Sequence record: PV745554.1 | Reading direction: 5' to 3' (one strand) | Length of the DNA stretch: 64,000 nt | In this document: positions 7,099-32,150 of the stretch, piece after piece | How positions within the stretch are numbered: position 1 is the stretch's first letter | How the letters are laid out: every line of letters starts with the position of its first letter | Translations under genes and position numbers: made by a program | Notes under the pieces: generated by a model | What the model saw: the letters and a program-made list of their open reading frames with translations, nothing else | The model's database searches: none | Told to the model about the DNA's origin: nothing

Positions 7099-7106
7099 GA
7101 GGGACC

Positions 7107-7756: not shown

Positions 7757-7757
7757 C

Positions 7758-7946
7758 GTGACCAACGAGGAGATCACCTTCGCGGGCCTGATCAAGGCCA
7801 TGGAGGACGCCCGCCGTGAAGCCCGCGCGGTGGGCGATCTCCTCAAGGCCGCCGAGATCGACGGCTGGTTCAAGGAGCACGCCCGGATCATCCGGGTGAT
7901 CCGCGACAAGGCCGAGGCCGAAGAATTCGACAATCCGTTGGCGTGA
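7758..7946 (+). CDS. hypothetical protein
   Basis: GTG start, typical codon use. Confidence 0.65.
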   Translation: MTNEEITFAGLIKAMEDARREARAVGDLLKAAEIDGWFKEHARIIRVIRDKAEAEEFDNPLA

Positions 7947-8010
7947 GAGTGTTGACAGTCTCGCCGCGCCCGGCTACAAGCCTCCTCGACGACAACGCAA
8001 GGAGCCTGTC
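7937..8010 (+). promoter_or_regulatory. sigma70 promoter cassette with upstream 18-bp element
   Basis: GTTGGCGTGAGAGTG-TTGACA-N17-TACAAG, GACGACAACG, AAGGAG. Confidence 0.85.
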
Positions 8011-9174
8011 TTGACCGATTTCCCGATCATCCGCGCCGCCATCGAAGGCCGCCGCGCCGCTGGTTTCGACACCGTCCTGGCCAACGCCGACGCCTTCGCT
8101 GCCGAGGGCGTGCTGATCAAGGCCGAGTTCGAGGACATCAAGGGCGTCTTCAGCCGCTGCCTCTCCGACGCCTGGGAAGTCGTGCGCAAGCGCCACTTCT
8201 TCATCGACCACGCCCTGCGCTCCAAGGAAGTCGAGGACCTCTTCTGGAGCTTCTCGATCCCCTACCCGCACGTCATGCCGGGCTTCCTGAAGAAGACCCT
8301 GGCGGCCAAGAACATCCCGGCCAACGTCCGCGAAGACCTCGTGGCCCTGTTCAACGAGGGCATCGCCCTCAACGACAAGCTGGTGGCGCTCAAGCCTCTG
8401 ATCGGCAAGCGCGCGCCCAAGAAGACCAAGGTCGAGATCGAGCGCGAGGGCAAGGAACGCACCTGCCAAATCTGCGGTCGCGGCATCCTGGCCGAGGGCG
8501 GCATCATCGCCCACCACGGCTACACCCGCCCCTACGAGGGCTGGCAGACCGCCTCCTGCTCTGGCGCCCGCGAGGTTCCGTTCGAACTGAGCCGCGACGA
8601 ACTGGGCAAAGAGATCGCCGCCCTGAAGGCGTGGCGCGTGCGCAAGGTGAACGAGCGCGCGGCGATCGAAGCCGAGACCGTCAAGCTGATCCTGAAGTAT
8701 CAGGTCTCCGAGCAGGACCCGCGCAAGGCGCAGGGCTTCAAGCTGACCGTCGATCGCCAGATCGAAGTCACCCGCGACACCTTCGAGGCCCTGAAGGTCT
8801 CCACGCCCGAGGCCTTCTCGGGCAAGTACAACCCCCGCAAGGAGGGCAAGTACACCTACGAGGCCCTGACCTTCGACGGCCTGAAAGAGCAGGCCCTGGG
8901 CATGGTCGACATCGAGATCGGCCGCCTGGACAACGACATCCTGCGCCAGCAGGCCCGCTATGACGCCTGGAGCCAGAAGGCGATCTTCGCCAAGGGCCGC
9001 TATTGGTTCATCGGTGATGAGGTCCAGACCGCCGACGGCGCGGTGGGCAGCATCAAGGGCTTCTACCAGCACTATCCGCCGCAGCCGGGCGACGTCGCGG
9101 GCGGCGTGCGTCTCGGGGCCGAGACCAGCGGTTTCGTCTCCTGGAACGTCGAGAGCCTGGAGCCGGTGGCCTGA
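8011..9174 (+). CDS. hypothetical protein with putative Zn-binding motif
   Basis: 387 aa; CQICGR...AHHGYTRP...WQTASC. Confidence 0.8.
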   Translation: MTDFPIIRAAIEGRRAAGFDTVLANADAFAAEGVLIKAEFEDIKGVFSRCLSDAWEVVRKRHFFIDHALRSKEVEDLFWSFSIPYPHVMPGFLKKTLAAKNIPANVREDLVALFNEGIALNDKLVALKPLIGKRAPKKTKVEIEREGKERTCQICGRGILAEGGIIAHHGYTRPYEGWQTASCSGAREVPFELSRDELGKEIAALKAWRVRKVNERAAIEAETVKLILKYQVSEQDPRKAQGFKLTVDRQIEVTRDTFEALKVSTPEAFSGKYNPRKEGKYTYEALTFDGLKEQALGMVDIEIGRLDNDILRQQARYDAWSQKAIFAKGRYWFIGDEVQTADGAVGSIKGFYQHYPPQPGDVAGGVRLGAETSGFVSWNVESLEPVA

Positions 9175-9575
9175 TGCGCTTCGTCTCCCCAAACCAACCC
9201 TACTGCCGCTGCTGCGGCAAGCCGATCAAGAAGTTCACGCTCCGGCACTCGTTTGGCAAGAGCGAGTACAAGGACCATGGCTGGTCGATCTCGCGCACCG
9301 AGAAACCGATGTCCAAGGAGGAACTCCAGCGCGCGGTCAACGGCCGGATCATCTCGTTCACCTGGGACCACGAGACGACCTACGACGCCAACTACGAGCC
9401 GATCCGCACGAAGACCTTCATCGGCGAGGCCAACGTCTGGGACGGCGAGACCTACGAGGCGCAGTTCTTCTGCACCATGCGGTGCGCCGCCGCGTTCGGG
9501 GAAATGGCCGCCCGTGAATATCCGGGCCTCCACACCCAGACCTACGCTGACGCCATGAAAAAGAGGGAGGGCTAA
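9174..9575 (+). CDS. hypothetical Cys-motif protein
   Basis: CRCCG near N-terminus, FCTMRCA near C-terminus. Confidence 0.75.
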   Translation: MRFVSPNQPYCRCCGKPIKKFTLRHSFGKSEYKDHGWSISRTEKPMSKEELQRAVNGRIISFTWDHETTYDANYEPIRTKTFIGEANVWDGETYEAQFFCTMRCAAAFGEMAAREYPGLHTQTYADAMKKREG

Positions 9576-10297
9576 TGTCCGACGAGATCAGGAAGACCCA
9601 CGAAGCCTTCGGCGTGATCGGCTACAGCCACACCCAGGGCGACACCGATCTGGTCGGCGTCGACTACGCCCAGGGGCACTACGTGTCCCTGACGATCAAG
9701 ACGGCGATCGCCTACGAGGGCGAGACGCACGATCGCTTCCACGGCGACAAGTACATCTGCAAGGTGTCGATGAGCGAGGTCCAGTGGGCCTCCTTCATCG
9801 CCAACCCCAACCGGGGTGACGGCGTGCCCTGCACCTTGCAGTTCTACCGTGACCCGCTGACCGGCGAGCCCAAGCAGCCGAGATACCTGCGCGAGCGCCT
9901 GACCCGCATCGACCGCACCCGCGAGGCCGTCACCGCCCGCGCCAAGGGCCTGTCGACCAAGGTCAAGGAAGCCCAGGCCGAACTCCAGCGGCTGATGGAC
10001 GGCGGCCCGATCAAGAAGGGCGATCTGAAGGCGCTCAAGGACCTGCTCTACTTCGCCAACCAGGACATGGACATGAACCTGGGCTACTTCGTCGAGCGGG
10101 TCGAGGAGACCATCGACAAGGCGGTGGTCGACGCCAAGGCCCAGGTCGACGCCCACGTCGACTTCGTGGTCCGGGAACTGGGCGTGCGCGCCCTGGGCTC
10201 GCGGCTGCAAGCGGCGATCGACGCGGGCCATGAGCCGGGCGCGGTCGGTCAAGCCCTGCTCGACGCGATAGCCCCACCCCAGGAGCCGCCGACGTGA
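9575..10297 (+). CDS. hypothetical phage protein
   Basis: 240 aa, coupled start. Confidence 0.8.
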   Translation: MSDEIRKTHEAFGVIGYSHTQGDTDLVGVDYAQGHYVSLTIKTAIAYEGETHDRFHGDKYICKVSMSEVQWASFIANPNRGDGVPCTLQFYRDPLTGEPKQPRYLRERLTRIDRTREAVTARAKGLSTKVKEAQAELQRLMDGGPIKKGDLKALKDLLYFANQDMDMNLGYFVERVEETIDKAVVDAKAQVDAHVDFVVRELGVRALGSRLQAAIDAGHEPGAVGQALLDAIAPPQEPPT

Positions 10298-10536
10298 GGA
10301 CGCCCCGCTTCCTGAACCGCTGGCGCGACCGCGACCTCGCCGAGGAGAAGGCCTTCCAGACCAAGGGTCTGGCCTTCGCCCACGCCGCGCGCATCGCCAG
10401 CCGCCTGGGCGAGATCGTTCGTGTCGAGCATCAGGAACCCATCAGCCAAGCCTCCCCGAACTGGGCGGTGGTCGAGAAGTGGAGCTTCCACCCCGACGGC
10501 CGCATGACCCGTGACCTCAAGAAGGAAGTCCTATGA
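10294..10536 (+). CDS. hypothetical protein
   Basis: GTGA overlap. Confidence 0.7.
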   Translation: MRTPRFLNRWRDRDLAEEKAFQTKGLAFAHAARIASRLGEIVRVEHQEPISQASPNWAVVEKWSFHPDGRMTRDLKKEVL

Positions 10537-11027
10537 CCCGCAGCACCACCGAGATCATCGCCCGCATCAAGTCCCTGGAGAACGACACGTCGGACTTCTT
10601 CGGCTTCCAGACGGGCGATCTCGTCTGCTATCTCCCCTTCGCCGACGCCAAGCCCTGGCTGAACGAGAACGCGACGGCCGAGGCCTGGACGCCCAGCGTC
10701 AACACGCCCGAGGCGATCAAGTCGACCATCCACGACTACATGTCGTTCGCCTGGGACAAGGCCAACAACTGCCGGGGCCTGTCGGCCGGCCGCTCACTAG
10801 ACCACATGAAGGCTTGGCTCTGGCTCTACGGCGCCGACGAAGCCTGGATCGAGGCCCTGCGCCTGGACAACTACACCATGTACGGCAAGCCCCAGCTTCG
10901 CGCGATCTGCGAGCACTTCGGCTGGGACTGGACCCAGTGGGATGACGGCTGCTGGACCAACAACGAGGGCGCGGCCGGCTACAGCCCGGACGAGGTCGAG
11001 CGCGTCGGCGTCCTGGCTGACGCCTAG
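10533..11027 (+). CDS. hypothetical phage protein
   Basis: 164 aa, RBS AGGAAG, ATGA overlap. Confidence 0.8.
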   Translation: MTRSTTEIIARIKSLENDTSDFFGFQTGDLVCYLPFADAKPWLNENATAEAWTPSVNTPEAIKSTIHDYMSFAWDKANNCRGLSAGRSLDHMKAWLWLYGADEAWIEALRLDNYTMYGKPQLRAICEHFGWDWTQWDDGCWTNNEGAAGYSPDEVERVGVLADA

Positions 11028-11098
11028 TTGGCGTTAGAGTGTTGACAGTCATTGGGGCCTCCTCTATATCCACCCTCGACGACAACGAGGAGGCCCCG
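11027..11098 (+). promoter_or_regulatory. sigma70 promoter cassette with upstream 18-bp element
   Basis: GTTGGCGTTAGAGTG-TTGACA-N17-TATATC, CCTCG-ACGACAA-CGAGG hairpin with SD. Confidence 0.88.
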
Positions 11099-12847
11099 AT
11101 GACGACCGAGACCATGACCCTGAGCTTCCGTATCGAAGGCGCCGCCCTGGTGGAGCGCGCCCGCGACCGGGTCATCGAAGGCGCCTGGGAGCATGGCCTG
11201 CGCATCCTCGTCGAGGGTCTGCACGGCATGACCTACGAGATCGCCATCGACATCCTGATGGGCAAGTACACCCTGGGCGGCTGGTCCTCGGACCCCGAGG
11301 GCGTCTACCTCACCGAGCAAGACCCCGAGGACGAGACCTTCAAGCGCTACAAGGAGACGTTCGACTTCCAGTTCGCCGGCGTCTTCAAGGACGAGACGGG
11401 CCGCATCATGCGCCCCTACGCCATCGTCGACAGCTACGGCAAGAAGGACTTCGACTCCAAGTACCGCTACGACCACGCCCGCGCGCGCGGCTCGGACGAG
11501 TTCCTGTCGCGCCCGGTGCGCTACCACGACATCCTGGGCAAGGACCCGATCGACTGGGCCTATCGCGCCCTGCATTACGCCAACCTGCCGCAGCAAGACA
11601 TCGTCAAGCGGGTCAAGAACCCCGGCGAATACCACGGCACGATCCAGGAGATGGCCGCGCTATTCGAGGTCATCCACGACTACCCCAAGCTCCTGCTGCC
11701 CTACGTCACCAACAGCGCCCAGGAGGCCGTCGACAAAGCGGTCGCCTCCGGCCGCCGGATGGAGAAGCGCGGCTATGTCCACGAGTACGGCCCCAATGAT
11801 CCGTTCGCTGAGTTCCACGCCGTGACGACCACGGCGATCGACAACTTGCCGCCCCAGTGGGTGATCGAGAACCAAGCCTATGAGCCCCCGGCGCCGGTCA
11901 AGGCCCTGGAGGACTTCAAGCAGGGCGTCGCGAGCGCCCCTGATGAGGTCTCGGCGATGAACCGGATGATCGTCAAGGAGGTCAACGCCGGCACGAGCAT
12001 GTCGACCGCCATCGCCCTGGCCCGCGCCAAGATGGCGCTGATGGGTGGCATGGCCGAGGACCCTGAAGAGCGCATGTCGGCGATTAACGCCCACTTGGCG
12101 GCGGAGGCCGAGCGCGCCGAAGGCAAGTCCAACGAGACCTACCGCAAGGCGATCCAGGAGCAGGCCGCCGGCGACTACTTCGATCTCGTGTACACGGGTA
12201 AGGGTGGCGAGGAGGTGACCCTGAAGGTCCCGACCGCGCCGTTCGAGAAGTGGTGCCTGTGGCGCACCGCCGGCGCTCACCTCGCCAAGCCGTGGAAGCG
12301 CGTCACCTATTCGGGTCTGAAGTGCTTCGGCGACGACCCCTATCACACCGACTGGGTCATCGGCGCGGGCCTGGAGCCCGAGGATTGGCCGACCCGCAGC
12401 GACGACCCGCTGCACAAGGCCGCCTGGGACAAGCGCTTCGAGGTCGCCCAGAGCAAGATGGGCGGCAATCTGGTGGTCCTGCTGGGCACGGGCTTCGTGA
12501 CCGGCAAGATCAAGCACCTCAAGCCGGGCGAGACCCTGGAGCGGGGGCAGATCGGCGTGATCCGCAACGCTGGCCCCGACTACGTCCAGGCCGCCGTCAG
12601 CGCGATCGACAACAACGCCGCCCTGATCACCGAGAACGGCGGCAACGTCGCCCACCTCGTCACCGAGTTCCGGGACAAGCCGCTGCGTCTGGTGCGCATC
12701 GCCGACGCCCGCAAGATTTTCAAGGACGGCATGGAGGTCGACCTCGACCTGGATAAGGCATGGCGCCGTATCTACGAAGGCTCGCGCGGTCCCGCGCCGG
12801 GTGACCTCTACCTGCCGCCGGAATGGGAGATTCAAGATGACGCATGA
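11099..12847 (+). CDS. protein with C-terminal PEP-utilising-enzyme mobile (phosphohistidine swivel) domain
   Basis: GTGFVTGKIKHL...IGVIRNAGPDY...ALITENGGNVAHLVTEFRD...IFKDGMEVDLD matches the ITExGGxxSH signature. Confidence 0.75.
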   Translation: MTTETMTLSFRIEGAALVERARDRVIEGAWEHGLRILVEGLHGMTYEIAIDILMGKYTLGGWSSDPEGVYLTEQDPEDETFKRYKETFDFQFAGVFKDETGRIMRPYAIVDSYGKKDFDSKYRYDHARARGSDEFLSRPVRYHDILGKDPIDWAYRALHYANLPQQDIVKRVKNPGEYHGTIQEMAALFEVIHDYPKLLLPYVTNSAQEAVDKAVASGRRMEKRGYVHEYGPNDPFAEFHAVTTTAIDNLPPQWVIENQAYEPPAPVKALEDFKQGVASAPDEVSAMNRMIVKEVNAGTSMSTAIALARAKMALMGGMAEDPEERMSAINAHLAAEAERAEGKSNETYRKAIQEQAAGDYFDLVYTGKGGEEVTLKVPTAPFEKWCLWRTAGAHLAKPWKRVTYSGLKCFGDDPYHTDWVIGAGLEPEDWPTRSDDPLHKAAWDKRFEVAQSKMGGNLVVLLGTGFVTGKIKHLKPGETLERGQIGVIRNAGPDYVQAAVSAIDNNAALITENGGNVAHLVTEFRDKPLRLVRIADARKIFKDGMEVDLDLDKAWRRIYEGSRGPAPGDLYLPPEWEIQDDA

Positions 12848-13133
12848 ACTGATTATGGTCCAGGTGGGTGGGCAAGCCCATTCGCACTTCTCGATCGAGA
12901 CGCGCGAGGCCGAGGTGCCGGGCGGAAAGCTCTACATCACCACGGCGCATGCCGGCGAGAACTGCGAGGCCATATCGGTCGCCCAGACCTTCGTGCCGAC
13001 GCCGCCGCCGTCTAAGGTCGTGACCATCCCCGACGAGGTGCTGCGCGACCTGATGAGCCGCAAGGACGTCGCCAGCGGGCGCTCGCTGCTCAAGAAGTGG
13101 CTGTTCGCCCACGGCCTGGAGCTTGAGGCCTGA
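12837..13133 (+). CDS. hypothetical protein
   Basis: ATG after GGGAG. Confidence 0.7.
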   Translation: MTHELIMVQVGGQAHSHFSIETREAEVPGGKLYITTAHAGENCEAISVAQTFVPTPPPSKVVTIPDEVLRDLMSRKDVASGRSLLKKWLFAHGLELEA

Positions 13134-13312
13134 TGCCGCTCTTCAGCTTCAAGGCTACGGTCACCTACCACGACGACGTCGTGATCGACGCCGAGGACGA
13201 GGACCACGCCCGCGAACTGGTGGCTGAGTCTGGCTTCACCGGAAGCCACATCGTCAGCCACGACGCCGACCTTGACCCCGAGATCAAGCTCCACCTGGAC
13301 GAGGAGGACTGA
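13133..13312 (+). CDS. small acidic hypothetical protein (absent from ORF track)
   Basis: 59 aa MPLFSFKATVTYHDDVVIDAEDEDHAREL; TGATG coupling. Confidence 0.7.
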   Translation: MPLFSFKATVTYHDDVVIDAEDEDHARELVAESGFTGSHIVSHDADLDPEIKLHLDEED

Positions 13313-13313
13313 C

Positions 13314-13820
13314 ATGGCCGATTTCAGTGAGGCCCGGCGTGCGGTCGCGACCGAGGAACTGATCACGCGCCTGAAGGCCCTCAAGGACCTGGAGGACGCC
13401 CGCGACATCCCGGACGAGGAGACCAAGTCGGCGCTGGCGGCGGCGATCCTGCGCCTTGGTGAGTACGAGGATGAGGTCCAAAGCAACAAGGCCACGATCG
13501 CGCGCCTTATGGGAGCCATCCATGCCTGGAGGACGATGGTCACCCAGGACCAGGGCGCGCCCGACTTCAAGCGCGCCGCCGCCCATCTGCACGTCTTCTC
13601 CACCTTCTACGACCGCATGTGGGCGATCGTTCGCACCTTCGAGAAGGCCGTGGATGAGACGGGCCTGCTGAACAAGACTGGTCCTGATCCGATCCGCCGG
13701 CTGATCTGGAAGTACATCCGCCACGATCTGGCCGGCGAACTGGGCTCGTCCATGCTCTGGTCGCACCGCAACGCCGTCGCCGCCCTCAAGGGCCTGGAAG
13801 ATGCGGAGCCGAAGGTTTGA
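13314..13820 (+). CDS. hypothetical protein
   Basis: ATG after GAGGAGG. Confidence 0.75.
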   Translation: MADFSEARRAVATEELITRLKALKDLEDARDIPDEETKSALAAAILRLGEYEDEVQSNKATIARLMGAIHAWRTMVTQDQGAPDFKRAAAHLHVFSTFYDRMWAIVRTFEKAVDETGLLNKTGPDPIRRLIWKYIRHDLAGELGSSMLWSHRNAVAALKGLEDAEPKV

Positions 13821-14029
13821 GCCGCCGCTACACCGGCCCGCGCTTCTGGGTCTCCGAGGACGGCCACGTCCACCAAATCCAGGACGGCGTCACCAACGTC
13901 GTCGCCACCCTCTCCCCGGACGAGATGAAACGGCTGCGCAAGTGCGGTTGGAACATCGGCTCGTCCACCCGCCGCTACGCCTACAACCCCGCCTCAATTC
14001 TCCGCAACGCCCTGGGAGCCGCCCGATGA
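13817..14029 (+). CDS. hypothetical protein
   Basis: TTGA overlap. Confidence 0.65.
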   Translation: MSRRYTGPRFWVSEDGHVHQIQDGVTNVVATLSPDEMKRLRKCGWNIGSSTRRYAYNPASILRNALGAAR

Positions 14030-14598: not shown

Positions 14599-14822
14599 TC
14601 GACTACGTCTACCGCAAAGACCCGCGCGGCAGCGACTACGGCGCCCAGCGGATGGACCTGAGTGAAGCCCTGGCGGTGGTCGCGGCCGAGAAGCAGGACT
14701 TCCTCATTCGCTTGGTCGAGGTCCTGCACGAGAACAACCTCCTGCGCGACGCCGACGTGCTGGAGTTGCTCGGCAAGGGCTGGGGCCTGGAGGCCTACGA
14801 CGTCCTGTACGTAGACGATTGA
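14595..14822 (+). CDS. hypothetical protein
   Basis: GTGA overlap after AGGAG. Confidence 0.7.
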   Translation: MIDYVYRKDPRGSDYGAQRMDLSEALAVVAAEKQDFLIRLVEVLHENNLLRDADVLELLGKGWGLEAYDVLYVDD

Positions 14823-14876
14823 CAACACTCTCGCGCCAGCATAGAAGCCTTCTCGACGACAACGAAGGAGGCTTCC
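14819..14876 (+). promoter_or_regulatory. sigma70 promoter cassette with inverted 18-bp element in the spacer
   Basis: TTGACA-ACACTCTCGCGCCAGCA-TAGAAG, GACGACAACG, AAGGAGG. Confidence 0.88.
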
Positions 14877-15248
14877 GTGAAGCTCGCGACCCAAGACCGG
14901 ACCGATCCCCGCCTGAACGCCGACTACCGCCTGATCAAGGCGGTCTTCTACTACGGCGGCCCGGCCGAGTACCCGATCCACCTGGACGAACGCTGGAGTG
15001 CGGTGACGCCGGCCCAGGTCGAGGACCAGATTTCGGTCCTCTGCCGCGACCTCGCCAAATGCGCGGGCAACACCCTGGCGCCGGCGACCTTCTACGAGCG
15101 CGCCAAGCTGAGCTTCGCCGAGGTGCCGCCGGTGTCCGACGAGTTCTGGGGCCTGATCTCCGAGACCACCAAGCAGAACATCCTCGCCCTGAAGGATCGC
15201 TTCACCGTCCACGGCAGCGGCTTCATGCTCTCGTGGGCCAAGGTCTGA
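14877..15248 (+). CDS. hypothetical protein
   Basis: GTG after the cassette SD. Confidence 0.8.
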   Translation: MKLATQDRTDPRLNADYRLIKAVFYYGGPAEYPIHLDERWSAVTPAQVEDQISVLCRDLAKCAGNTLAPATFYERAKLSFAEVPPVSDEFWGLISETTKQNILALKDRFTVHGSGFMLSWAKV

Positions 15249-15586: not shown

Positions 15587-15587
15587 C

Positions 15588-16288: not shown

Positions 16289-16305
16289 TCCTTGGCCGTC
16301 TTGTG

Positions 16306-16362
16306 TTGACAAAGGCAGGTTCGCCGGCCTAGAACGTCATCGACGACAACAAAGGAGGCCCC
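16306..16362 (+). promoter_or_regulatory. sigma70 promoter cassette
   Basis: TTGACA-N18-TAGAAC, GACGACAAC, AAGGAGG. Confidence 0.85.
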
Positions 16363-16719
16363 ATGCCGCTGTATGATTTCCCGACCGGCCCGACCACGAT
16401 GGAAGACATCGAAGCGTTCGTCGCCGGCGCCCAGGCGGTGGTCAACGCCCAGATGGCGAAGACCTTCCCGAACGTGAGCCCGCCGGTCCTGACGATCGAG
16501 CCGGTGCGCGCCAACAGCCAGTTCGCCAAGATCGTGGCAAGCGACCGCGCCCAGCGCTCGGTCTGGGCGTTCGTTCGCCTGGAGAACGGCCTGATCTACA
16601 AGCCTTCCTCCTGGAAGGTCCCGGCCAAGCACGCGCGCGGCACCATCCACTCCGCTGGCCACGGCGCCGAGTACGTCGACTGGACCGGCCCGCGCTACAT
16701 CAAGGACATGCGCCCGTGA
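16363..16719 (+). CDS. hypothetical phage protein
   Basis: SVWAFV...GLIYKPSSWKVPAKHARGTI motif. Confidence 0.8.
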   Translation: MPLYDFPTGPTTMEDIEAFVAGAQAVVNAQMAKTFPNVSPPVLTIEPVRANSQFAKIVASDRAQRSVWAFVRLENGLIYKPSSWKVPAKHARGTIHSAGHGAEYVDWTGPRYIKDMRP

Positions 16720-20558: not shown

Positions 20559-20559
20559 C

Positions 20560-22321: not shown

Positions 22322-22323
22322 CG

Positions 22324-22938: not shown

Positions 22939-22945
22939 AAAGTGT

Positions 22946-23002
22946 TTGACAACACTCTCACGCCAACATAGAACCCTCCTCGACGACAACGAGGAGGGCC
23001 GC
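22946..23002 (+). promoter_or_regulatory. sigma70 promoter cassette with inverted 18-bp element in the spacer
   Basis: TTGACA-ACACTCTCACGCCAACA-TAGAAC; perfect CCCTCCTCG-ACGACAA-CGAGGAGGG hairpin. Confidence 0.9.
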
Positions 23003-23422
23003 ATGGCTTACGTAATTCCCGACCTGAGCACCTTCACCTTCACAGACCCGTCGGTGGAAAGCTTCGCCAGGGCCATGATCTCGATGATCGAGGCCAACCA
23101 AGCGATCATCGACGAGTTCGCCAAGAGCCTGATCGAGAACCCCGTGCGCGCGCTGGAGCGCAGCCTGTCCGTCAAGCTGGCCGCCGTCCGCCAGAGCGAA
23201 GCCAACGATGCCCTGGGCCACGTCCTGGACACGATGCTGCACGGCGACGACAAGACCTGGGCCTACATCAAGCTCGAAATTCAGCAGTCGCTGACCTATC
23301 ACGTGGTCTATGCCGCTTCCCATCCGTCGCGGTCGACCTGCGTCGAGACCAACGACATGGCGCGCTTCGAACTGCAAGCCAAGGCCGAGATGCTCGACCG
23401 CCTGACGAAGGGCCGCTTCTAA
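23003..23422 (+). CDS. hypothetical protein
   Basis: ATG after the cassette SD. Confidence 0.8.
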   Translation: MAYVIPDLSTFTFTDPSVESFARAMISMIEANQAIIDEFAKSLIENPVRALERSLSVKLAAVRQSEANDALGHVLDTMLHGDDKTWAYIKLEIQQSLTYHVVYAASHPSRSTCVETNDMARFELQAKAEMLDRLTKGRF

Positions 23423-23664: not shown

Positions 23665-23675
23665 GCGAGGACCCC

Positions 23676-23981: not shown

Positions 23982-23982
23982 G

Positions 23983-24677: not shown

Positions 24678-24682
24678 GCAGC

Positions 24683-24753
24683 TTGGCGTTTGTGTGTTGA
24701 CAGCATCAGTCCGGTTCTGTAGACCTCTGCTCGACGACAACGAGGAGGCCCCC
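24683..24753 (+). promoter_or_regulatory. sigma70 promoter cassette
   Basis: TTGGCGTTTGTGTG-TTGACA-N17-TAGACC, GACGACAACG, AGGAGG. Confidence 0.85.
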
Positions 24754-24960
24754 ATGCCGCATCTGAGCAAACAGTCCTACAGCTTCGACTACACCAGCGA
24801 CGCCCTGGCGGCGGCCGGCGAGTTCGAGGCCCTGACGACCGAGTTCTACCGCTACGAGACGCGCTACCTCTACGACGCGGCGCGCGCGATCGTCGGCGTC
24901 GAGGTCCGCGTCATGGACGAGGACGGCTTCTTCGTCGGCTACGTGGCGGGCGAGGCCTAA
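24754..24960 (+). CDS. hypothetical protein
   Basis: ATG after the cassette SD. Confidence 0.75.
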   Translation: MPHLSKQSYSFDYTSDALAAAGEFEALTTEFYRYETRYLYDAARAIVGVEVRVMDEDGFFVGYVAGEA

Positions 24961-24963
24961 GCC

Positions 24964-25568: not shown

Positions 25569-25594
25569 AATTTTAATCTGGAGAGGGCCTTAAG

Positions 25595-27631
25595 TTGCTG
25601 AATTTCCAACCGTTTAAGACGGCCGTCGCGGCGCAGTTCGCCAAGATGTCCAAGGGCCAACTCTACCGCGTCGAGGTCGACAAGGACCTCCTGTGGCAGA
25701 CCTACCTCGCCGCCTTCCCGCCGGGCACGGACCCGATGTTCCGCGCGCGCACCGAGCACAACTGCTCGTGCTGCCGCGCCTTCGTGCGCCAGGGCGGCGA
25801 CGTCGTGGCCATCGTCGACAACAAGATCGTCACCCTGTGGGACATCACCGTTCCGGGCGAGCCGGCCTACCAGCAGGTCGCCAACAGCCTCGCGGGCCTG
25901 ATCCGCTCGCGGCCGATCGCCGACGTCTTCCTGCACGACCAGAAGTCGATCGGCACCGACCGCAGCGTCGAGTCGCTGCTGGGCGGCGATGACGTGGTCT
26001 GGAACCACTTCTACTGCGACGTGCCCCAGCAGTTCGTCAAGAAGCGCACCGACATCCCCACGGCGCTGCACGGCCCGCGCATGGCGGCCGAGACGCTGCT
26101 GCGCGCGGTGACCGACATCAGCCGTGAGGCGGTCGAGACCGTGCTGGAACTGGTCGCCCAGAAGTCGGTCTACCGGATCGAGGAGCACAAGGCGACCGTC
26201 GAGGCCTTCCGGGCGATGCAGAACAGCTTCGCCGGCAAGACGGGCCTGGACGCGACGCTGCACGCCTGGACCACGGCCACCAAGGGCGAGGTCTGGGGCT
26301 CGGTGATCGGCATCAAGAACACCGTGATCGGCTCGCTGCTGCTCGACCTGTCGGGCGACATGGAGATCGAGGACGCGGTCAAGAAGTACGAGACCAAGGT
26401 CGCGCCGCAGAACTACAAGCGCACCTCGACGATCGCCACCAAGCGCCAGATCGAGGCCGCCAAGAAGACGCTGGAGGACCTGGGTCTGACCTCGGCCCTG
26501 GAGCGCCGCTACGCCGTCCTGACGGACGTGTCGATCAACGACGTCCTGTTCGCCGATCGCTCGGCCAAGGCGGCGCTGAGCGCGGACGTGTTCTCGGAGA
26601 TGGCGGCCGAGGTGGGCGAGAAGACCAAGTCGTTCGACAAGGTCGAGGAGGTCCCGATCGATCGCTTCCTGAGCGACATCCTGCCCAAGGTCACGTCGAT
26701 CGAGGCCCTGGTCGAGAACCGTCTGGCGGGCAACTTCGTCAGCCTGATCGCGCCCAAGAACCCGACGGCCGGCAACCTCTTCAAGTGGGGCAACAACTTC
26801 TCCTGGTCCTATGCCGGCGAGGTCGCGGACTCCATCAAGCAGCGCGTCAAGGCCGCTGGCGGTAACGTCTCGGGCGACCTCTGCTGCCGCCTGGGCTGGT
26901 TCAACCACGACGACCTCGACTTCCACATGTACGAGCCGGGCGGTGGTCACATCTTCTTCCGCGAGAAGGTCTCCGAGCGCACGCGTGGTCAACTCGACGT
27001 CGACATGAACGCCGGGCGCGGCACCACGCGCTCGCCGGTCGAGAACATCTTCTACGGCGACCGCAAGCGGATGAAGGAGGGCGTCTACGAACTGAAGGTC
27101 CACCAGTTCGATAACCGCGACGCCTCGCGCGATCCGGGCTTCGAGGTCGAGATCGACTACCTGGGCGCGGTGACCAAGTTCGCCTACGCCAAGGCCCTGC
27201 GCTACCAGGAATACGTCACGGTCGCCAAGTTCGAGTACAGCCACGCCGGCGGGATCAAAATCCTGTCGTCGCTGCCGTCGTCCTCGGCGAGCAAGGACGT
27301 CTGGGGCGTGAAGACCGAGACCTTCCGCAAGGTCAACGTCGTCATGCTGTCGCCCAACTTCTGGGACGGCGAGCCGGGCGTCGGCAACAAGCACTTCTTC
27401 TTCATGCTGGAGGGCGGCATCAACGAGGACGGCGCGCGCGGCTTCTACAACGAGTTCCTCAAGGACTCGCTGAGCCCGCACCGCCGCGTCTTCGAGATGC
27501 TGGGCTCCAAGCTGAAGCCCGCGCCGGCCGCCGAGCAACTCTCGGGCCTGGGCTTCTCGTCGTCCAAGCCCGACACCCTGACCGTCAAGGTCTCGGGCGC
27601 CTTCACCCGCGTTCTGAAAATCAAGTTCTAG
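25595..27631 (+). CDS. large uncharacterised phage protein with N-terminal HNCSCC motif and C-terminal YfaP/DUF2135-like domain
   Basis: 678 aa; LGWFNHDDLDFHMYEPGG...GQLDVDMNAG...PVENI...EGVY. Confidence 0.8.
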   Translation: MLNFQPFKTAVAAQFAKMSKGQLYRVEVDKDLLWQTYLAAFPPGTDPMFRARTEHNCSCCRAFVRQGGDVVAIVDNKIVTLWDITVPGEPAYQQVANSLAGLIRSRPIADVFLHDQKSIGTDRSVESLLGGDDVVWNHFYCDVPQQFVKKRTDIPTALHGPRMAAETLLRAVTDISREAVETVLELVAQKSVYRIEEHKATVEAFRAMQNSFAGKTGLDATLHAWTTATKGEVWGSVIGIKNTVIGSLLLDLSGDMEIEDAVKKYETKVAPQNYKRTSTIATKRQIEAAKKTLEDLGLTSALERRYAVLTDVSINDVLFADRSAKAALSADVFSEMAAEVGEKTKSFDKVEEVPIDRFLSDILPKVTSIEALVENRLAGNFVSLIAPKNPTAGNLFKWGNNFSWSYAGEVADSIKQRVKAAGGNVSGDLCCRLGWFNHDDLDFHMYEPGGGHIFFREKVSERTRGQLDVDMNAGRGTTRSPVENIFYGDRKRMKEGVYELKVHQFDNRDASRDPGFEVEIDYLGAVTKFAYAKALRYQEYVTVAKFEYSHAGGIKILSSLPSSSASKDVWGVKTETFRKVNVVMLSPNFWDGEPGVGNKHFFFMLEGGINEDGARGFYNEFLKDSLSPHRRVFEMLGSKLKPAPAAEQLSGLGFSSSKPDTLTVKVSGAFTRVLKIKF

Positions 27632-27643
27632 GAAAGGAAGACC

Positions 27644-28060
27644 ATGGAAAACATCTTCGAAGTCGCCTCGCGCGAAAAGTACCGCTACGAGTCCGCCAAG
27701 GGCCTCATCTCGACCGAGGACCTGTGGGACCTGCCGCTGACCAGCGACACGGGCAAGGCCAACCTGAACGACATCGCCGTGGCCCTGTTCAAGCAGGTCA
27801 AGGACCTGGACGACATCTCGTTCGTCAAGCCCAAGACGCTCGACAAGACCGTCGCCCCGCGCCTGGAGATCGTCAAGGCGGTGATCGCCTACCGCCAGGA
27901 CGAGAACCGCAAGAAGCTGGAAGCCAACACCAAGCGCGAGACCGCCCGCATCCTGCAAGAAGCCATCAGCGCCAAGCGCTCCGAGAAGATCGCCGGCACC
28001 CCGCTGGAAGAACTCGAAGCGCAACTAGCCGCGCTGAAGGCCGAGGGCGTCGAGGCCTAA
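27644..28060 (+). CDS. helical hypothetical protein, partner of the upstream gene
   Basis: ATG after AGGAAG; KGLISTEDLWDLPL motif and coiled-coil tail. Confidence 0.8.
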   Translation: MENIFEVASREKYRYESAKGLISTEDLWDLPLTSDTGKANLNDIAVALFKQVKDLDDISFVKPKTLDKTVAPRLEIVKAVIAYRQDENRKKLEANTKRETARILQEAISAKRSEKIAGTPLEELEAQLAALKAEGVEA

Positions 28061-28067
28061 TCGGCTG

Positions 28068-28128
28068 TTGACAACACTCTAACGCCAACATAGAAGGGCC
28101 TCCGACGACAACGCCGGAGGCCTTTTTC
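28068..28128 (+). promoter_or_regulatory. sigma70 promoter cassette with inverted 18-bp element and terminator-like hairpin
   Basis: TTGACA-ACACTCTAACGCCAACA-TAGAAG; GGCCTCCG-ACGACAACGC-CGGAGGCC-TTTTT. Confidence 0.88.
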
Positions 28129-28359
28129 ATGCTCTATCTGACCCCGATCAAGAAACCGGTGACGGACGCCGAGTTCGGGATGTCCGTCAAGGACGTTGAA
28201 CTGAATGGCCGCCGCTATCGCGTGAGCCGCTCAGGTGAGGTGCGTGGCTACGTGCGCAATTCGCGTGTCCTGACGATGCACCACGAAGACCTGCGTCTGC
28301 TGGACTTCCGTGGACCAACCGCTATCCGCGCCCGCGCCGCCTCGGGGTGGTTCGAATGA
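28129..28359 (+). CDS. hypothetical protein (paralogue of 32582-32800)
   Basis: GRRYRVSRSG...RARAASGWF. Confidence 0.75.
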   Translation: MLYLTPIKKPVTDAEFGMSVKDVELNGRRYRVSRSGEVRGYVRNSRVLTMHHEDLRLLDFRGPTAIRARAASGWFE

Positions 28360-28823
28360 GCGACACACCCAAGACCTTCACCGCCGACGAGGTCGCCGCC
28401 GCCATGGCGGCCCAGAACCGCGCCAACCGCCGCCTGGAAGCTCGGGCGGTCGAGAAGGAGCGCGAGGCCGGCGAGCGCCGCCAGCAAATCGCCCTGGACG
28501 ACCTGCGCCGCCAGATGATGGCCGGCGCCCGCGCCAACGTCGAGCGTGGCGTGTACACGCTGTCGACTCTGGAGTGCGACGAGTACCGCCACACCAACGT
28601 GGTGCTGGCCGAGGTCCGCACCCGCGTCTTCGCCGCCCGGCTGTCGTTCTCGGACGAGGACGCGGCCTGGACGATCGAGGCAATCATCCGCCGCTACCCC
28701 GGCGGCTCGGCCCGTGTCTTGGAGAAGGAAGTCCTGACGCAGCAGGCGGCCTGGGACTTCTACAACGAGATCATCGAGCGCTTCTACAACACCACCGGCT
28801 TCATCTGCCGCGTCGATTACTAG
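28356..28823 (+). CDS. hypothetical protein
   Basis: ATGA overlap. Confidence 0.75.
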   Translation: MSDTPKTFTADEVAAAMAAQNRANRRLEARAVEKEREAGERRQQIALDDLRRQMMAGARANVERGVYTLSTLECDEYRHTNVVLAEVRTRVFAARLSFSDEDAAWTIEAIIRRYPGGSARVLEKEVLTQQAAWDFYNEIIERFYNTTGFICRVDY

Positions 28824-28837
28824 GGAGGGACCCCGAC

Positions 28838-29299
28838 ATGATGGCTCACCTGATCCTCAACACCGCCCAGCAGCGCACCATGAACGAGGTGTCCGACGCG
28901 CTGGCCTACCTGATCCGCAACGACGGCGATCCCAACAGCGCCGGCGAGGGCTACTACAACATGCTGCACCTGGACCGGATCGCCGACGACGTCACGGGCC
29001 TGTTCGCCCCCGTCGGCGAGCGTCCCCTGGCCAGGACGCTGTTCGACGTCCAGGCGACCTTCCGGGGCTACTGGAAGGGCCAGTACCCAAAGGTGGACAC
29101 CCTGAAGAAATGGGCCGCCGAGGTCAAGCCGCACTTCAAGAGCCTGGATCGGGTGCGATACATCAACCGCCCGCCGGTCGAGCCCAAGACCGTCCGCGAG
29201 GAGGTCATGGCCAAGCTCTCCAAGAGCTATACCCAGGCCGAGATCGCCGTCTTCCTGGGGAACCTGGAGCAGCACGGCTTCGCGGTGGTCAAGGCCTGA
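28838..29299 (+). CDS. hypothetical protein
   Basis: ATG after GGGAGGG. Confidence 0.75.
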   Translation: MMAHLILNTAQQRTMNEVSDALAYLIRNDGDPNSAGEGYYNMLHLDRIADDVTGLFAPVGERPLARTLFDVQATFRGYWKGQYPKVDTLKKWAAEVKPHFKSLDRVRYINRPPVEPKTVREEVMAKLSKSYTQAEIAVFLGNLEQHGFAVVKA

Positions 29300-29472
29300 T
29301 GCACTTCGTCTTCAACCGTAGGCTGGACGAGTGCGCCGATCGCCTGACCTGGGCGCTTGGAGCCCTGTCCGATGCCCACCGCCGATATGCCGATCGGCGG
29401 GCCGTTGCGGGCCTGGAAGAAGACGCCCGGCTTGCCTGGAAAACCCTGGAGCGCTTCACGCTCTGGTGCTGA
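29299..29472 (+). CDS. small hypothetical protein
   Basis: TGATG coupling. Confidence 0.55.
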   Translation: MHFVFNRRLDECADRLTWALGALSDAHRRYADRRAVAGLEEDARLAWKTLERFTLWC

Positions 29473-29477
29473 ACTTT

Positions 29478-29549
29478 GTTGGCGCGAGAGTGTTGACAGC
29501 ATCGTCCTGACGCCATAGAACCCTCTCGACGACAACGAAGGAGGCCCCG
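29478..29549 (+). promoter_or_regulatory. sigma70 promoter cassette with upstream 18-bp element
   Basis: GTTGGCGCGAGAGTG-TTGACA-N17-TAGAAC, GACGACAACG, AAGGAGG. Confidence 0.88.
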
Positions 29550-29936
29550 ATGGGCGCGCAACTGGAAATCAAGGAAGTCTTCGCCGCCTCGCAGGACGCC
29601 GTCTATTCCTGGCGTGGCGAAGAAGGCGACGAGTACCGCGTGATGAGCCTCGTTCACGTCCAGACGATGGACGGCCGCTGGTTCCTGATGCCGGCCATGC
29701 GGCCCTACTCGGACGTCGAGCGCTTCGACTTCGAGATGGCCTGCGAGGGCGAGCCCCTCTTTGGCATGGCGACCGTCTACTGGGACGCCGAGGCCTTCGC
29801 CGCCAAGGTCCGCGCGCGCGGCGTGATCCGCCCGGAATTCTGGGTCGAGTACGAGCCCGACACCCGCACGACCGCGCAGCGCTTCGAGGACATGTGGATC
29901 GAAGAGCAGTACGACCGCATGGGGTACGCCGCATGA
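29550..29936 (+). CDS. hypothetical protein
   Basis: ATG after the cassette SD. Confidence 0.8.
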   Translation: MGAQLEIKEVFAASQDAVYSWRGEEGDEYRVMSLVHVQTMDGRWFLMPAMRPYSDVERFDFEMACEGEPLFGMATVYWDAEAFAAKVRARGVIRPEFWVEYEPDTRTTAQRFEDMWIEEQYDRMGYAA

Positions 29937-30175
29937 GCGCCCGCCAGAAACAGACCGTGATCGACAAGCTGGAGAAGACCTACAAGTCGATCCAGGCCCA
30001 GCAGGCGCGCGGCGTCAACTGGGGCACCAAGGCGTGCCTCGAACTGGTCGATCGCTACAACGACCTGAAGGCGGAAGCCACCCGCGTCGGAGGCCATAGC
30101 AACCCCGAGTGGAAGGCCTACTGCGAGCGTCACGGCTCCAGCGTCGCCCACGACGGCTACGATCTGTGGGCGTGA
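29933..30175 (+). CDS. hypothetical protein
   Basis: ATGA overlap. Confidence 0.75.
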   Translation: MSARQKQTVIDKLEKTYKSIQAQQARGVNWGTKACLELVDRYNDLKAEATRVGGHSNPEWKAYCERHGSSVAHDGYDLWA

Positions 30176-30177
30176 TC

Positions 30178-30420
30178 ATGTCCCGCACCGTCAAGGTCGA
30201 GCGAGGCAGGACGACCTACTACGTCACCATCGACGAGGCCGGCGAGGTCATCGCCATCTCGGGCTTGGCGGTGGTCGGCAAGGTCCCGCGCCACAAGGGC
30301 GGCAAGCGCCGCGTGCCCTGGAGCGGCGCGCATTGGCACGCCGGCTACAAGACCCCGATCCCACAACAACTGAAGCCGATCGCCGACGAGGCGGTCCAAC
30401 AGAAGGAACCCCAGGCTTGA
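30178..30420 (+). CDS. hypothetical protein
   Basis: ATG start, fills the operon. Confidence 0.65.
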   Translation: MSRTVKVERGRTTYYVTIDEAGEVIAISGLAVVGKVPRHKGGKRRVPWSGAHWHAGYKTPIPQQLKPIADEAVQQKEPQA

Positions 30421-30590
30421 GCCCGCAGCAGCCGATCGCGCCCAAGGTGGGCAAGGCCGAGGTCCTGGAGGAGATCGCCAATCTCGAAGAGATGATGACG
30501 ATCCAGACCATTCGTTTTGGCATGGGACCGCTCAACGCCGACAAGGTGTTGGAGCGCTGCGCCCTCATCCGGAGGTACATCGAACAATGA
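30417..30590 (+). CDS. small hypothetical protein
   Basis: TTGA overlap after AAGGAA. Confidence 0.55.
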   Translation: MSPQQPIAPKVGKAEVLEEIANLEEMMTIQTIRFGMGPLNADKVLERCALIRRYIEQ

Positions 30591-31042
30591 GCGACTCGCT
30601 CCTCCTCATCAATCCCGACGGTGCCAACTTCCAGGCCCAGGCCGTGCTCGCGGTGGTCCGCGACATGCTGGGCGAGGACTTCGAGCCCTCCTGGAGCACC
30701 GACCTGGGCGATTATCTCGCCGAGCCGCGTCTGGCCCGCTTCGACAACAGCCGCGTCGCCGGCTACGTGATCTGGATGCGCGACAGCCGGGCGTGCGCCT
30801 GGATGGGTCCCGAAGGCTGGCGCCAGATCAACATCAATTTCTATCAGCACGGCGTCAGCGACCAGATCATCGTCAACGGCTGGCGCACGGTCTATCGCGA
30901 TGATCTGCCGCCGACCCGCCACGATATGCCCGACGTCGAGGACATGCACCGCCGGCAAATCTTCGAACAACGCGAGATCGTGCCGGCCGCCGAGTACATC
31001 GTCCACCTGCTGACGGAGTTCTGGGAGGAAGGCAACACGTGA
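30587..31042 (+). CDS. hypothetical protein
   Basis: ATGA overlap after GGAGG. Confidence 0.75.
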   Translation: MSDSLLLINPDGANFQAQAVLAVVRDMLGEDFEPSWSTDLGDYLAEPRLARFDNSRVAGYVIWMRDSRACAWMGPEGWRQININFYQHGVSDQIIVNGWRTVYRDDLPPTRHDMPDVEDMHRRQIFEQREIVPAAEYIVHLLTEFWEEGNT

Positions 31043-31347
31043 CGCGGCCCGTCGACCACCACGGCTTCCCGTGCCCCGACCGCTTCTGGCCGCTGGAGGA
31101 CATTGACGTCGTCCTGGCGCTGACAGGCGACGAGATCATCGCCCGGCGTAAGGCCAGGGGCGATTACGTCGCCGGGCGCGCGGCGACGAACGCCAGGAGC
31201 GAGATCATGCGCGGCTACCAGTGGCGCCCGGCCGAGGAGCGGGCACGGATCGACGTGGTGTTCGCCGAGCGGGATGAGGTCATCGAACTGAGGGCCGAGA
31301 ACGCCCGGTTGCGGAAGGAACTGGAGGCGCTACGTGGACGACTATGA
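31039..31347 (+). CDS. hypothetical protein
   Basis: GTGA overlap. Confidence 0.7.
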   Translation: MTRPVDHHGFPCPDRFWPLEDIDVVLALTGDEIIARRKARGDYVAGRAATNARSEIMRGYQWRPAEERARIDVVFAERDEVIELRAENARLRKELEALRGRL

Positions 31348-31666
31348 CGCCTGCCTGACCAACTGGGTCGTCTGCCTCACGCCCATTCCGGTGATCGTCC
31401 GGGGCGGCGCCGCGCCCGAGCCGGGCGTGGTGCTCGTCGGCGAGATCATGCAGGACCGCAAGAAGCGCTGGCCGGACGGTCGTCTCGTTCACACCTCGGT
31501 GCTCCTGAGCGCGCGGGCGCTGATCAAGCCGGGCGAGGTCGTGCGCACCCTGCGCAGCCGTTATCTGCTGGGCCGGCCCGCCGAGGAGATTACCCTGCGC
31601 CATAGCCTGGGGGCGATGTTCGCCCAGGTTATCATCCAACCGCTCGAATGTCCGAAACTTGCGTGA
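31334..31666 (+). CDS. hypothetical phage protein
   Basis: GEIMQDRKKRWPDGRLVHTS...VRTLRSRYLL motif. Confidence 0.7.
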   Translation: MDDYDACLTNWVVCLTPIPVIVRGGAAPEPGVVLVGEIMQDRKKRWPDGRLVHTSVLLSARALIKPGEVVRTLRSRYLLGRPAEEITLRHSLGAMFAQVIIQPLECPKLA

Positions 31667-31684
31667 TTGTCCGAATCTCGGAGA

Positions 31685-32074
31685 ATGTCCGAAATGAAGC
31701 TCGATCACCTCACTCCCGCGCAACGTCTGGAACACCGTCGTGCGCAGAAGCGTGCAAGCTACCGACGGAACCGAGGGCATCACATTCGTCGCGTCTCGAA
31801 GACTGTGAAGTCCAAGCTGCTCGCAGCCAACGAAGAGGCTTGCGGCTACGCACGGCCGGAAGTCTGCGAGGCCTGCGGTGAAAGGGATTCCAAAGACGCC
31901 GCTCTCGCGCTGGATCACAATCATCTCACGGGCGTGATCCGGGGATGGCTTTGCCGACGGTGTAATTTACTACTTGGAAGTGCAAATGACGATGCTCGCC
32001 TGCTGCGCCTCCTAGCCGCTTATCTCGACGAGCCCGGCTATATGCCCAGTCGGAATGGCCCGCACGGAAACTGA
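31685..32074 (+). CDS. endonuclease VII-like (His-Me finger) free-standing nuclease
   Basis: CEAC...LALDHNHLTGVIRGWLCRRCNLLLGSANDD; atypical, lower-GC codons; start may be 31694. Confidence 0.85.
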   Translation: MSEMKLDHLTPAQRLEHRRAQKRASYRRNRGHHIRRVSKTVKSKLLAANEEACGYARPEVCEACGERDSKDAALALDHNHLTGVIRGWLCRRCNLLLGSANDDARLLRLLAAYLDEPGYMPSRNGPHGN

Positions 32075-32078
32075 ATTT

Positions 32079-32150
32079 GTTGGCTTTAGAGTGTTGACAG
32101 TTCTCTAGTCTGGCCACTATATGCTCCTCGACGATAACGAGGAGGCCACG
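32079..32150 (+). promoter_or_regulatory. sigma70 promoter cassette with upstream 18-bp element
   Basis: GTTGGCTTTAGAGTG-TTGACA-N18-TATATG; CTCCTCG-ACGATAA-CGAGGAG hairpin. Confidence 0.88.

Follow-up and report, generated by a model that had tools for sequence, protein, structure and literature searches.

Early promoters of Caulobacter phage BL64, a giant phage of the phiCbK type, carry an 18-base element in their -35 region in either of two orientations. The element is found at about two dozen promoters, is fused to the -35 hexamer, is under selection in both placements and recurs outside the phiCbK-type phages; the finding is real, non-random and functional-looking. In all likelihood, it is where a putative regulatory protein docks. 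We analysed the right-hand 64 kb of BL64 (PV745554.1, Poindextervirus rogue, 224,634 bp), referred to below as the window, which is the whole 64,000-nucleotide (nt) stretch and corresponds to genome positions 160,635-224,634 (window 7000-12000 is 100% identical to BL64 167,634-172,634), and the remainder of the genome was added for a genome-wide count. From window 6053 to beyond 36,000 the genes lie on the plus strand, and those annotated are small and mostly hypothetical; left of 5915 they lie on the minus strand.

A recurrent element in register with the -35 hexamer

An earlier note on this DNA had described a recurring 18-mer whose last TTG is also the TTG of TTGACA, together with inverted copies that start within TTGACA and fill the spacer. 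Both the recurrence and the register proved correct, and we refer to the two layouts as the upstream class and the spacer class. The degenerate 18-mer has five exact matches in the window (7937+, 11027+, 29478+, 22950- and 28072-), compared with none in 100 shuffles, and nine matches with up to three mismatches, compared with 0.15 expected. The relaxed threshold adds 14823- and 32079+ (one mismatch each) and 24682+ and 2516-2533- (three each). All positions given previously stand to within one base, with shifts from 16292 to 16291, from 34516 to 34515 and from 24683 to 24682. The copies described as weak at 16291 and 34515 have only TTGGC and GTGTTG in common with the consensus (6-7 mismatches). 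Additional copies absent from the note lie at 5980+ and 35893+ (four mismatches each), and a weak inverted copy is found in a minus-strand promoter at 5939-5967. Every copy is held in an intergenic gap of 55-78 bp.

When the rest of the genome is included, there are 17 matches with three or fewer mismatches, all within genome 117-193 kb, and 16 of them are fused to TTGACA, TTGACG or TTGTCA. The structural, lysis and replication modules and the terminal repeat of BL64 contain no match at this threshold. About ten more upstream-class promoters and one of the spacer class lie outside the window, all at genome 116-159 kb, bringing the upstream class to about 20 promoters across genome 116-203 kb, ranging from exact to degenerate, and the spacer class to four or five.

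Architecture of the promoter module

The element is embedded in a module of which there are about 24 in the genome, on whichever strand carries the genes. Each runs from the upstream region through TTGACA, a spacer of 17-18 nt, a -10 hexamer, a further 6-8 nt, the sequence CGACGACAAC and a strong ribosome-binding site to the start codon. The -35 hexamer is TTGACA in 23 modules and TTGACG in one, and the -10 is mostly TAGAAG/C, at times TATAAG, TACAAG or TATATC, with weaker forms (TAGATG, TAGACC, TATAGG, TAAAGT, TAAATG) in several modules. Promoters of the Caulobacter housekeeping sigma factor, sigma-73, combine a -35 resembling TTGACG/TTGACA with a -10 that fits GCTANAWC, separated by 16-18 nt, and with their hexamers, spacer length and host-type -10 the modules would be expected to be of this type. 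A scan of window 5800-43000 (37 kb) with the standard sigma-70 consensus returned no promoters, because the -10 fits the Caulobacter GCTANAWC rather than TATAAT and the hexamers end in G or C; annotation pipelines tuned to Escherichia coli miss the entire promoter set.

In the upstream class, the element occupies approximately -50 to -33, its last bases supplying the TTG of the -35. In the inverted class, the reverse complement of the element runs from the CA of TTGACA through the 17-nt spacer to the -10 (approximately -32 to -15). Since GTGTTG-A-CAACAC is palindromic, reflection about the A of TTGACA turns one placement into the other. Among the modules not of the spacer class, GTG stands immediately 5' of TTGACA in 19 of 20 and 16 of 20 have an in-register TGGC, so that the upstream element grades from exact to degenerate. 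The spacer-class promoters (window 14819, 22946 and 28068, genome 152.7 kb, and the weak one at 5939-5967 on the minus strand) are all without an upstream element. The modules in the window are as follows.

7937-8013 (+): upstream-class module; exact element 7937-7954, -35 at 7952-7957, 17-nt spacer, -10 TACAAG, leader CGACGACAAC, start of BL64_241
11027-11101 (+): upstream-class module; exact element 11027-11044, -35 at 11042, -10 TATATC, start of BL64_246; complement of the ribosome-binding site inside the spacer
14819-14879 (+): spacer-class module; -35 at 14819-14824, inverted element 14823-14840 (one mismatch), -10 TAGAAG, start of BL64_253
16291-16365 (+): upstream-class module; degenerate element (TTGGC and GTGTTG kept), 18-nt spacer
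22946-23005 (+): spacer-class module; exact inverted element 22950-22967; partial left half AAAGTG 8 bp from CACTCT; orthologous phiCbK promoter is of the upstream class
24682-24756 (+): upstream-class module; element with three mismatches
28068-28131 (+): spacer-class module; exact inverted element 28072-28089; leader hairpin GGCCTCCG/CGGAGGCC followed by a T run, terminator-like
29478-29552 (+): upstream-class module; exact element 29478-29495
32079-32153 (+): upstream-class module; element with one mismatch, 18-nt spacer; the same gene in phage Rogue is behind a spacer-class promoter
34515-34588 (+): upstream-class module; degenerate element, 18-nt spacer
35893-35967 (+): upstream-class module; degenerate element, four mismatches
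5939-6055: divergent promoter region; its plus-strand upstream-class module has the element at 5980-5997 and the -35 at 5995
5939-5967 (-): minus-strand promoter of the divergent region; TTGTCA, spacer beginning ACACATCGGCGC, TAGGGT; weak spacer-class form, feeding an operon with a GcrA-like gene
2458-2533 (-): upstream-class module; element 2516-2533, feeding an operon with a TgrL-like XRE gene

Several other readings of this arrangement were rejected. A 'half-operator' model, in which a dyad centred on the -35 has lost one half by decay, was tested across the spacers of 29 upstream-class promoters, which were no closer to the inverted element than shuffles (P=0.20). Both arms around an 8-bp centre were seen at two sites only, one in phage Bajun (L275:4290) and one at window 22946; the remaining sites are single arms. 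By inspection, the inverted copies have no -10 on the opposite strand that would make them antisense promoters, and sigma-54, LexA (GTTC-N7-GTTC), DnaA box, IHF and CtrA sites misfit in spacing or bases.

Selection acts on the element in both placements

Orthologous promoters of BL64 and phiCbK were paired through their downstream proteins, which gave six upstream-class and two spacer-class pairs. In the upstream-class pairs, the 15-nt element region is 83% identical (75/90), compared with 58% for the spacer (60/104; Fisher P=1.5e-4), and the next 5 nt upstream are identical at 12 of 30 positions. In the spacer-class pairs it is the spacer that is conserved (16/17 and 15/17, or 91%), and the upstream 15 nt are ~30% identical (3/15 and 6/15). 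The constraint moves with the element, which by this comparison is selected in both placements.

Such differential conservation inside the cassette is difficult to reconcile with a functionless relic of promoter cassettes that were duplicated and then homogenised by gene conversion, although the modules are clearly paralogous cassettes whose leaders and spacers are common within sub-families. The same consensus is also present in phages with ~40% protein identity and in unrelated prophage contexts, and we regard a relic as extremely improbable.

The same gene can follow either class

Promoter class is not a fixed property of the gene downstream. The MAYxIPD gene of BL64, Rogue and BL10 follows a spacer-class promoter and that of phiCbK an upstream-class one, and the MSYTEAHME gene follows a spacer-class promoter in Rogue and an upstream-class promoter in BL64. 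Long-leader promoters matching the Rogue MSYTEAHME promoter are present in phiCbK, Karma and BL10 (matched by leader, not by downstream gene). BL64 and Rogue belong to one species (~98% identity), and the homology between window 31990-32153 and its Rogue counterpart (L025:4290-4490) does not reach upstream of the ribosome-binding site and start codon. The upstream class of the BL64 MSYTEAHME promoter is due to replacement of the entire upstream block, gene and promoter, up to the ribosome-binding site; promoter modules therefore act as mosaic junctions. Along the genome, the two classes are interleaved on one strand without evident functional grouping.

These observations bear on the two-state switch suggested in the earlier note, in which one protein activates the upstream class from a class II position and represses the spacer class, in the manner of lambda cI at PRM/PR or of MarA at activated promoters versus the rob promoter. 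The positions fit textbook rules, with the upstream copy at approximately -50 to -33, overlapping the -35 and centred near -41, and the inverted copy in the spacer; the placements are mutually exclusive in BL64, and the site is asymmetric, as in the marbox of E. coli. However, activator-dependent promoters usually have a poor -35, and no defective -35 was found in the 24 modules (TTGACA in 23, TTGACG in one, with an optimal spacer). The occurrence of either class before the same gene in related phages and the interleaving of the classes also argue against a switch, which we consider unlikely and, on balance, less likely than control of both classes with the same sign.

The element outside Caulobacter phages

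A blastn search with one module returned 30 Caulobacter and three Brevundimonas phage records. Phage Bajun, in which the proteins in common with BL64 are only ~28-58% identical, carries (C)TTGGCGCGAGAGTG joined to TTGACA six times or more, and phage Kikimora has the exact 21-mer before its tyrosine recombinase gene, the same place as in BL64 (genome 117,075) and phiCbK. In phage Papperlapapp (L300, upstream of the integrase), the unit and its own TTGACA are followed 11 bp downstream, at a distance of one helical turn, by another TTGACA with a proper spacer and -10. Since the Papperlapapp unit stands apart from the functional -35, TTGACA would belong to the recognised site. In the large Bertelyvirus phages CcrSC and C2 and in a Roseobacter phage, the corresponding site bears at most a faint resemblance to the element.

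A pattern scan of viral contigs identified three direct copies, 34 and 36 bp apart and with the hexamers TTGCCA, TTGACA and TTGACA, in an unrelated contig (L032). Read rightward, these copies have no usable -10, and the array precedes a separate TTGACG-N17-TATATA promoter; on the opposite strand, the third copy resembles a weak promoter of the spacer class (TTGTCA and AATCAT, with the element as the 17-nt spacer). The operon behind the separate promoter encodes an 86-residue protein, for which there is an nr record from Brevundimonas diminuta, a 162-residue protein and a DUF5906 primase-helicase. A second related prophage, found in a metagenome scan (L293), has three copies, a direct pair at a distance of 34 bp and an inverted one, in the divergent region before the homologous operon; a third (L280) has the operon and lacks the element. 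The arrays of the Brevundimonas-type prophages are located at L282:14303-14393 and L293:3672-3768, and the adjacent operons encode a small protein (79-86 residues), a second protein (142-162 residues) and the DUF5906 primase-helicase. The small proteins are 34% identical to each other and have no BL64 homolog and no Pfam family match. Only a holin, a Holliday-junction resolvase and the primase-helicase are common to the prophages and BL64, and the BL64 primase-helicase (BL64_148) is 30-38% identical to its prophage homologs. BL64_148 lies downstream of the genome-117,075 promoter, and a further TTGACA promoter-like site is located just before it.

Together, these cases show what appears to be a recognised unit of ~21 bp that includes TTGACA and is also read away from a functional -35. 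Because the unit is present at such positions, the prophage arrays and the Papperlapapp site point to a DNA-binding protein rather than to polymerase alone. The latter possibility would make the element an intrinsic determinant of promoter strength, a GC-rich UP-like or extended -35 sequence read by host RNA polymerase with no separate factor, and the inverted copies a by-product. Consistent with this are the proximal UP-element position with its T-tract flank, the continuous grading from exact to degenerate over strong early promoters (TGGC in register in 16/20, GTG beside the -35 in 19/20) and the conservation across phages of two host genera. Yet the C-terminal domain of the polymerase alpha subunit cannot read the spacer copies, which are the best conserved, the spacer-class promoters are entirely without an upstream element, and the prophage arrays, read toward their operon, are not promoters. 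UP elements are A/T-rich, lie at -40 to -60 and are found upstream only; the BL64 element has a GC-rich core with a short T-tract flank, and conserved copies lie in spacers. We find an effect intrinsic to polymerase very unlikely.

A further alternative is a site for replication or recombination: the DUF5906 primase-helicase (BL64_148) could use it as an iteron or the small tyrosine recombinase (BL64_144) as a half-site, or it could be a homology patch for the exchange of gene blocks. The most widely conserved copy precedes the recombinase-to-primase operon in BL64, phiCbK, Kikimora and Papperlapapp, the prophage arrays precede the homologous primase operon, the inverted arms around 8 bp at Bajun L275:4290 and window 22946 resemble a recombinase core site, and one mosaic junction falls exactly at a module. 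On the other hand, ~25 copies spread over 80 kb and register-locked to the -35 are unlike the layout of an origin or of recombination sites, and nearly all copies are single half-sites. The site consensus is unchanged although the primases are only 30-38% identical, and a related prophage has the primase without the element. Such a role is, in our estimate, quite improbable.

An exact element was also observed in a metagenome contig of much lower GC content (45%; L285:732-800), within an upstream-class promoter (TTGACA-N17-TATTCT) that is followed by a ribosome-binding site and ATG, and a degenerate second copy lies upstream.

Candidate binders

Conservation in both placements, in distant Brevundimonas phages and in the three-copy prophage arrays supports the view, already put forward in the earlier note, that the sequence at the -35 behaves as a cis-regulatory protein-binding site. 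Of the binders proposed there, the XRE and GcrA proteins found no support in the motifs, and winged-helix proteins are still candidates. We scanned the BL64 genome with five published matrices from chromatin immunoprecipitation sequencing (TgrL, RtrA, RtrB, CdxA and CdxB; half-site ACAAC(C); PMC10688885, S2) and found no enrichment on the element. For TgrL, CdxA, RtrA and CdxB, the best scores near promoters were mostly below the genome-wide 99.9th percentile. The RtrB matrix gave marginal matches of ~10 bits near promoters, above this percentile and apparently on the leader, not on the element. An XRE binder of the TgrL/RtrA/RtrB/CdxA/CdxB type was rejected because the published matrices do not score on the element. 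A GcrA/CcrM-type promoter was likewise not supported, as GANTC is absent from the 18-mer and from its consensus flanks.

The regulators considered in the window are the following.

805-1185 (-): XRE regulator, ortholog of phiCbK TgrL; its published motif does not match the element
5173-5721 (-): GcrA-like protein, candidate only; the element is without GANTC
38163-38711 (+): BL64_309, annotated as a winged-helix helix-turn-helix (HTH) DNA-binding protein, candidate only; HxlR/MarR matches are weak and below the Pfam cut-off

BL64 encodes numerous HTH proteins, among which none of the AraC family was found. One of them, BL64_150 (L004:12503-13102), is the ortholog of a Kikimora protein annotated 'MotA middle transcription regulator' (L216:24869-25459). 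Its predicted structure is a MarR/PadR-like winged helix (mean predicted local distance difference test score 64, core >80). Neither Pfam nor the PDB gave a sequence match to the BL64_150/Kikimora 'MotA' protein, and its 50 best fold matches listed contain no MotA structure, so the MotA lead, as far as sequence and modelled fold can tell, was rejected. The element is also unlike a T4-type MotA box, in that the -35 is intact and the 50 best matches listed include no MotA fold (no AsiA search was made).

Between BL64 and the Brevundimonas phages, the HTH proteins have diverged strongly (identity 58% for the TgrL HTH, 45% for BL64_151, 42% for BL64_150 and 28% for the GcrA-like protein), the site consensus is unchanged, and no regulator is common to BL64 and the prophages. 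A conserved host factor is therefore slightly favoured over a phage protein as the putative binder.

A model for regulation at the -35

We propose an asymmetric recognition site of ~21 bp, with the consensus GTTGGCGCGAGAGTG followed by TTGACA, in which the 18-mer is the specific part and which would be read by a sequence-specific DNA-binding protein. The phiCbK-type phages would have incorporated it into the -35 region of early promoters that are themselves presumably read by host sigma-73 RNA polymerase, laying it over the -35 in two mirror-image ways, upstream (~20 promoters) or in the spacer (4-5), a choice made possible by TTGACAA being nearly its own reverse complement. In either placement, the bound protein would sit on DNA that sigma region 4 must contact, and it would regulate both classes in the same direction, by competing with RNA polymerase or by holding it. 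The outcome would be a coordinated, affinity-graded shut-off of early transcription, unlike an activate/repress switch.

During phiCbK infection, expression of ~41% of genes is highest at 15 min and falls afterwards (PMC10688885). Because both placements cover the DNA contacted by sigma region 4, and because early genes peak and then fall, coordinated shut-off or polymerase holding is favoured, though with modest confidence. The core promoters are near consensus throughout, so that no activator seems to be needed; near-consensus cores and the finding of the same genes behind either class suggest that the two classes are equivalent in regulation. For the explanation as a whole, a protein site of ~21 bp in early -35 regions with same-sign control of both classes, we judge the chance to be a little short of even.

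Several points weigh against it. The centre of the upstream placement, near -41, is the classic position of a class II activator, and activators are also more typical of the place taken by the prophage arrays and the Papperlapapp unit, upstream of the core promoter. The difference in class between BL64 and Rogue is a replacement of the whole block, which would indicate that either class is tolerated rather than that the two are equivalent. Beyond the two sites with both arms, there is no residual second half-site marking a dimer that straddles the -35 (P=0.20). Finally, promoters and classes were assigned from sequence, and the binder of the element is putative; we infer the binding of a protein, the sign of its effect and its identity.

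In a more specific form of the proposal, a conserved Caulobacteraceae DNA-binding factor would recognise the 21-bp site, -35 included, and both the virulent phiCbK-type phages (~25 early promoters) and the temperate Brevundimonas prophages (three-copy arrays before the replication operon) would be wired to it. This is possible, though we hold it only tentatively and as less than probable; the factor could be a protein that rides on RNA polymerase. If true, the factor would be a host hub for phages that time early transcription or sense the state of the host.

Relationship to known systems

The arrangement is reminiscent of the marbox, the site of MarA, SoxS and Rob in E. coli, which is asymmetric, ~20 bp long and without dyad symmetry, functions in either orientation, and overlaps the -35 in class II activated promoters or lies between the -35 and the -10 in repressed ones (rob). 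The BL64 element is likewise asymmetric, has two orientations and either overlaps the -35 or lies in the spacer, but its -35 is perfect (that of marbox promoters is weak), its sequence is unrelated and no AraC-family member was found among the phage HTH proteins. In phage lambda, one type of operator (OR2 and OR1, bound by cI) activates PRM when it abuts the -35 from upstream and represses PR from inside the promoter; the lambda operators, however, are dyad-symmetric, few and confined to one control region, whereas the BL64 site is asymmetric and is spread over ~25 unidirectional promoters of a virulent phage.

The stoperators of mycobacteriophage L5, bound by gp71, are short asymmetric sites that include the complement of TTGACA and are present in many copies in short intergenic gaps. 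They lie in transcribed DNA, always in the same orientation to transcription, and act by blocking elongation. The BL64 element is also short and asymmetric, with many intergenic copies across the genome. Unlike stoperators, it is locked to the -35, lies in promoters and has two orientations. In T4, a MotA box (with AsiA) replaces the -35 of middle promoters, cassettes of promoter and stem-loop serve as recombination junctions, and ribosome-binding sites are hidden in read-through RNA. A phage-wide promoter module, a factor site at the -35, modules at junctions and, by prediction, ribosome-binding sites hidden in read-through RNA are features that BL64 has in common with T4, although in BL64 the -35 is intact. 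Repeated intergenic elements in the archaeal, AT-rich halovirus HF2 turned out to be promoters (PMC8707807); unlike for the BL64 element, the abstract describes no flipping of orientation around a promoter element.

The principle of an operator integrated into promoters is thus familiar; the mirror placement around the -35 and the reach into prophages are unexpected. Research on the Caulobacter cell cycle uses phiCbK as its standard phage. A full-text literature search for the motif found nothing, and the phiCbK genome paper mentions promoters once, so the phiCbK promoters were previously undescribed, and an early-promoter module with a selected cis element is now defined. The proposal predicts a regulator that should be retrievable directly with a 21-bp bait. 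A host protein as binder would tie the early transcription of these phages to the physiology of a model organism; a phage protein would be an early-gene regulator for a family with genomes of ~200 to 350 kb. For Caulobacter engineering, the modules also offer a ready supply of strong promoters.

Leaders, hairpins and a further promoter-like site

The sequence CGACGACAAC, which is invariant at the predicted transcription start of the modules, has 12 exact copies in the window and 33 copies with at most one mismatch, compared with ~7 expected. The exact copies are located as follows.

CGACGACAAC, window 6029, 7987, 11077, 14854, 16341, 22981, 24732, 28103, 29527, 34565, 35943 and 42634

A stretch complementary to the ribosome-binding site lies between the -10 and the invariant GACGACAAC or, in the modules with their -35 at 11042 and 34530, within the spacer. 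The complementary stretch is upstream of the expected transcription start and was observed in the modules at 7975-8013, 11048-11101, 14842-14879, 22969-23005, 28091-28131 and 34536-34588 and in most others. When leaders were folded one by one, 59 of the 72 core ribosome-binding-site bases were paired in read-through RNA, compared with 28 of 72, weakly, in RNA starting at GACGACAAC. RNAalifold found no consensus structure for 18 leaders, because the stems shift. The folds suggest that only locally initiated transcripts would be well translated, as with T4 gene e.

The leader hairpin at window 28097-28127 is followed by TTTTT, and its phiCbK counterpart (L003:31510-31537) is annotated as a rho-independent terminator. 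As the 5' arm of the hairpin is upstream of the local start, it would stop read-through RNA and spare RNA from its own promoter.

In phiCbK, CtrA-dependent promoters have been reported near the terminal repeat (PMC9437464). Window 47446-47530, ~5 kb upstream of the terminal repeat, contains a promoter-like site (TTGACA-N17-TAGATG) with TTAAC motifs in and after the spacer, and from these motifs the site may be controlled by CtrA.

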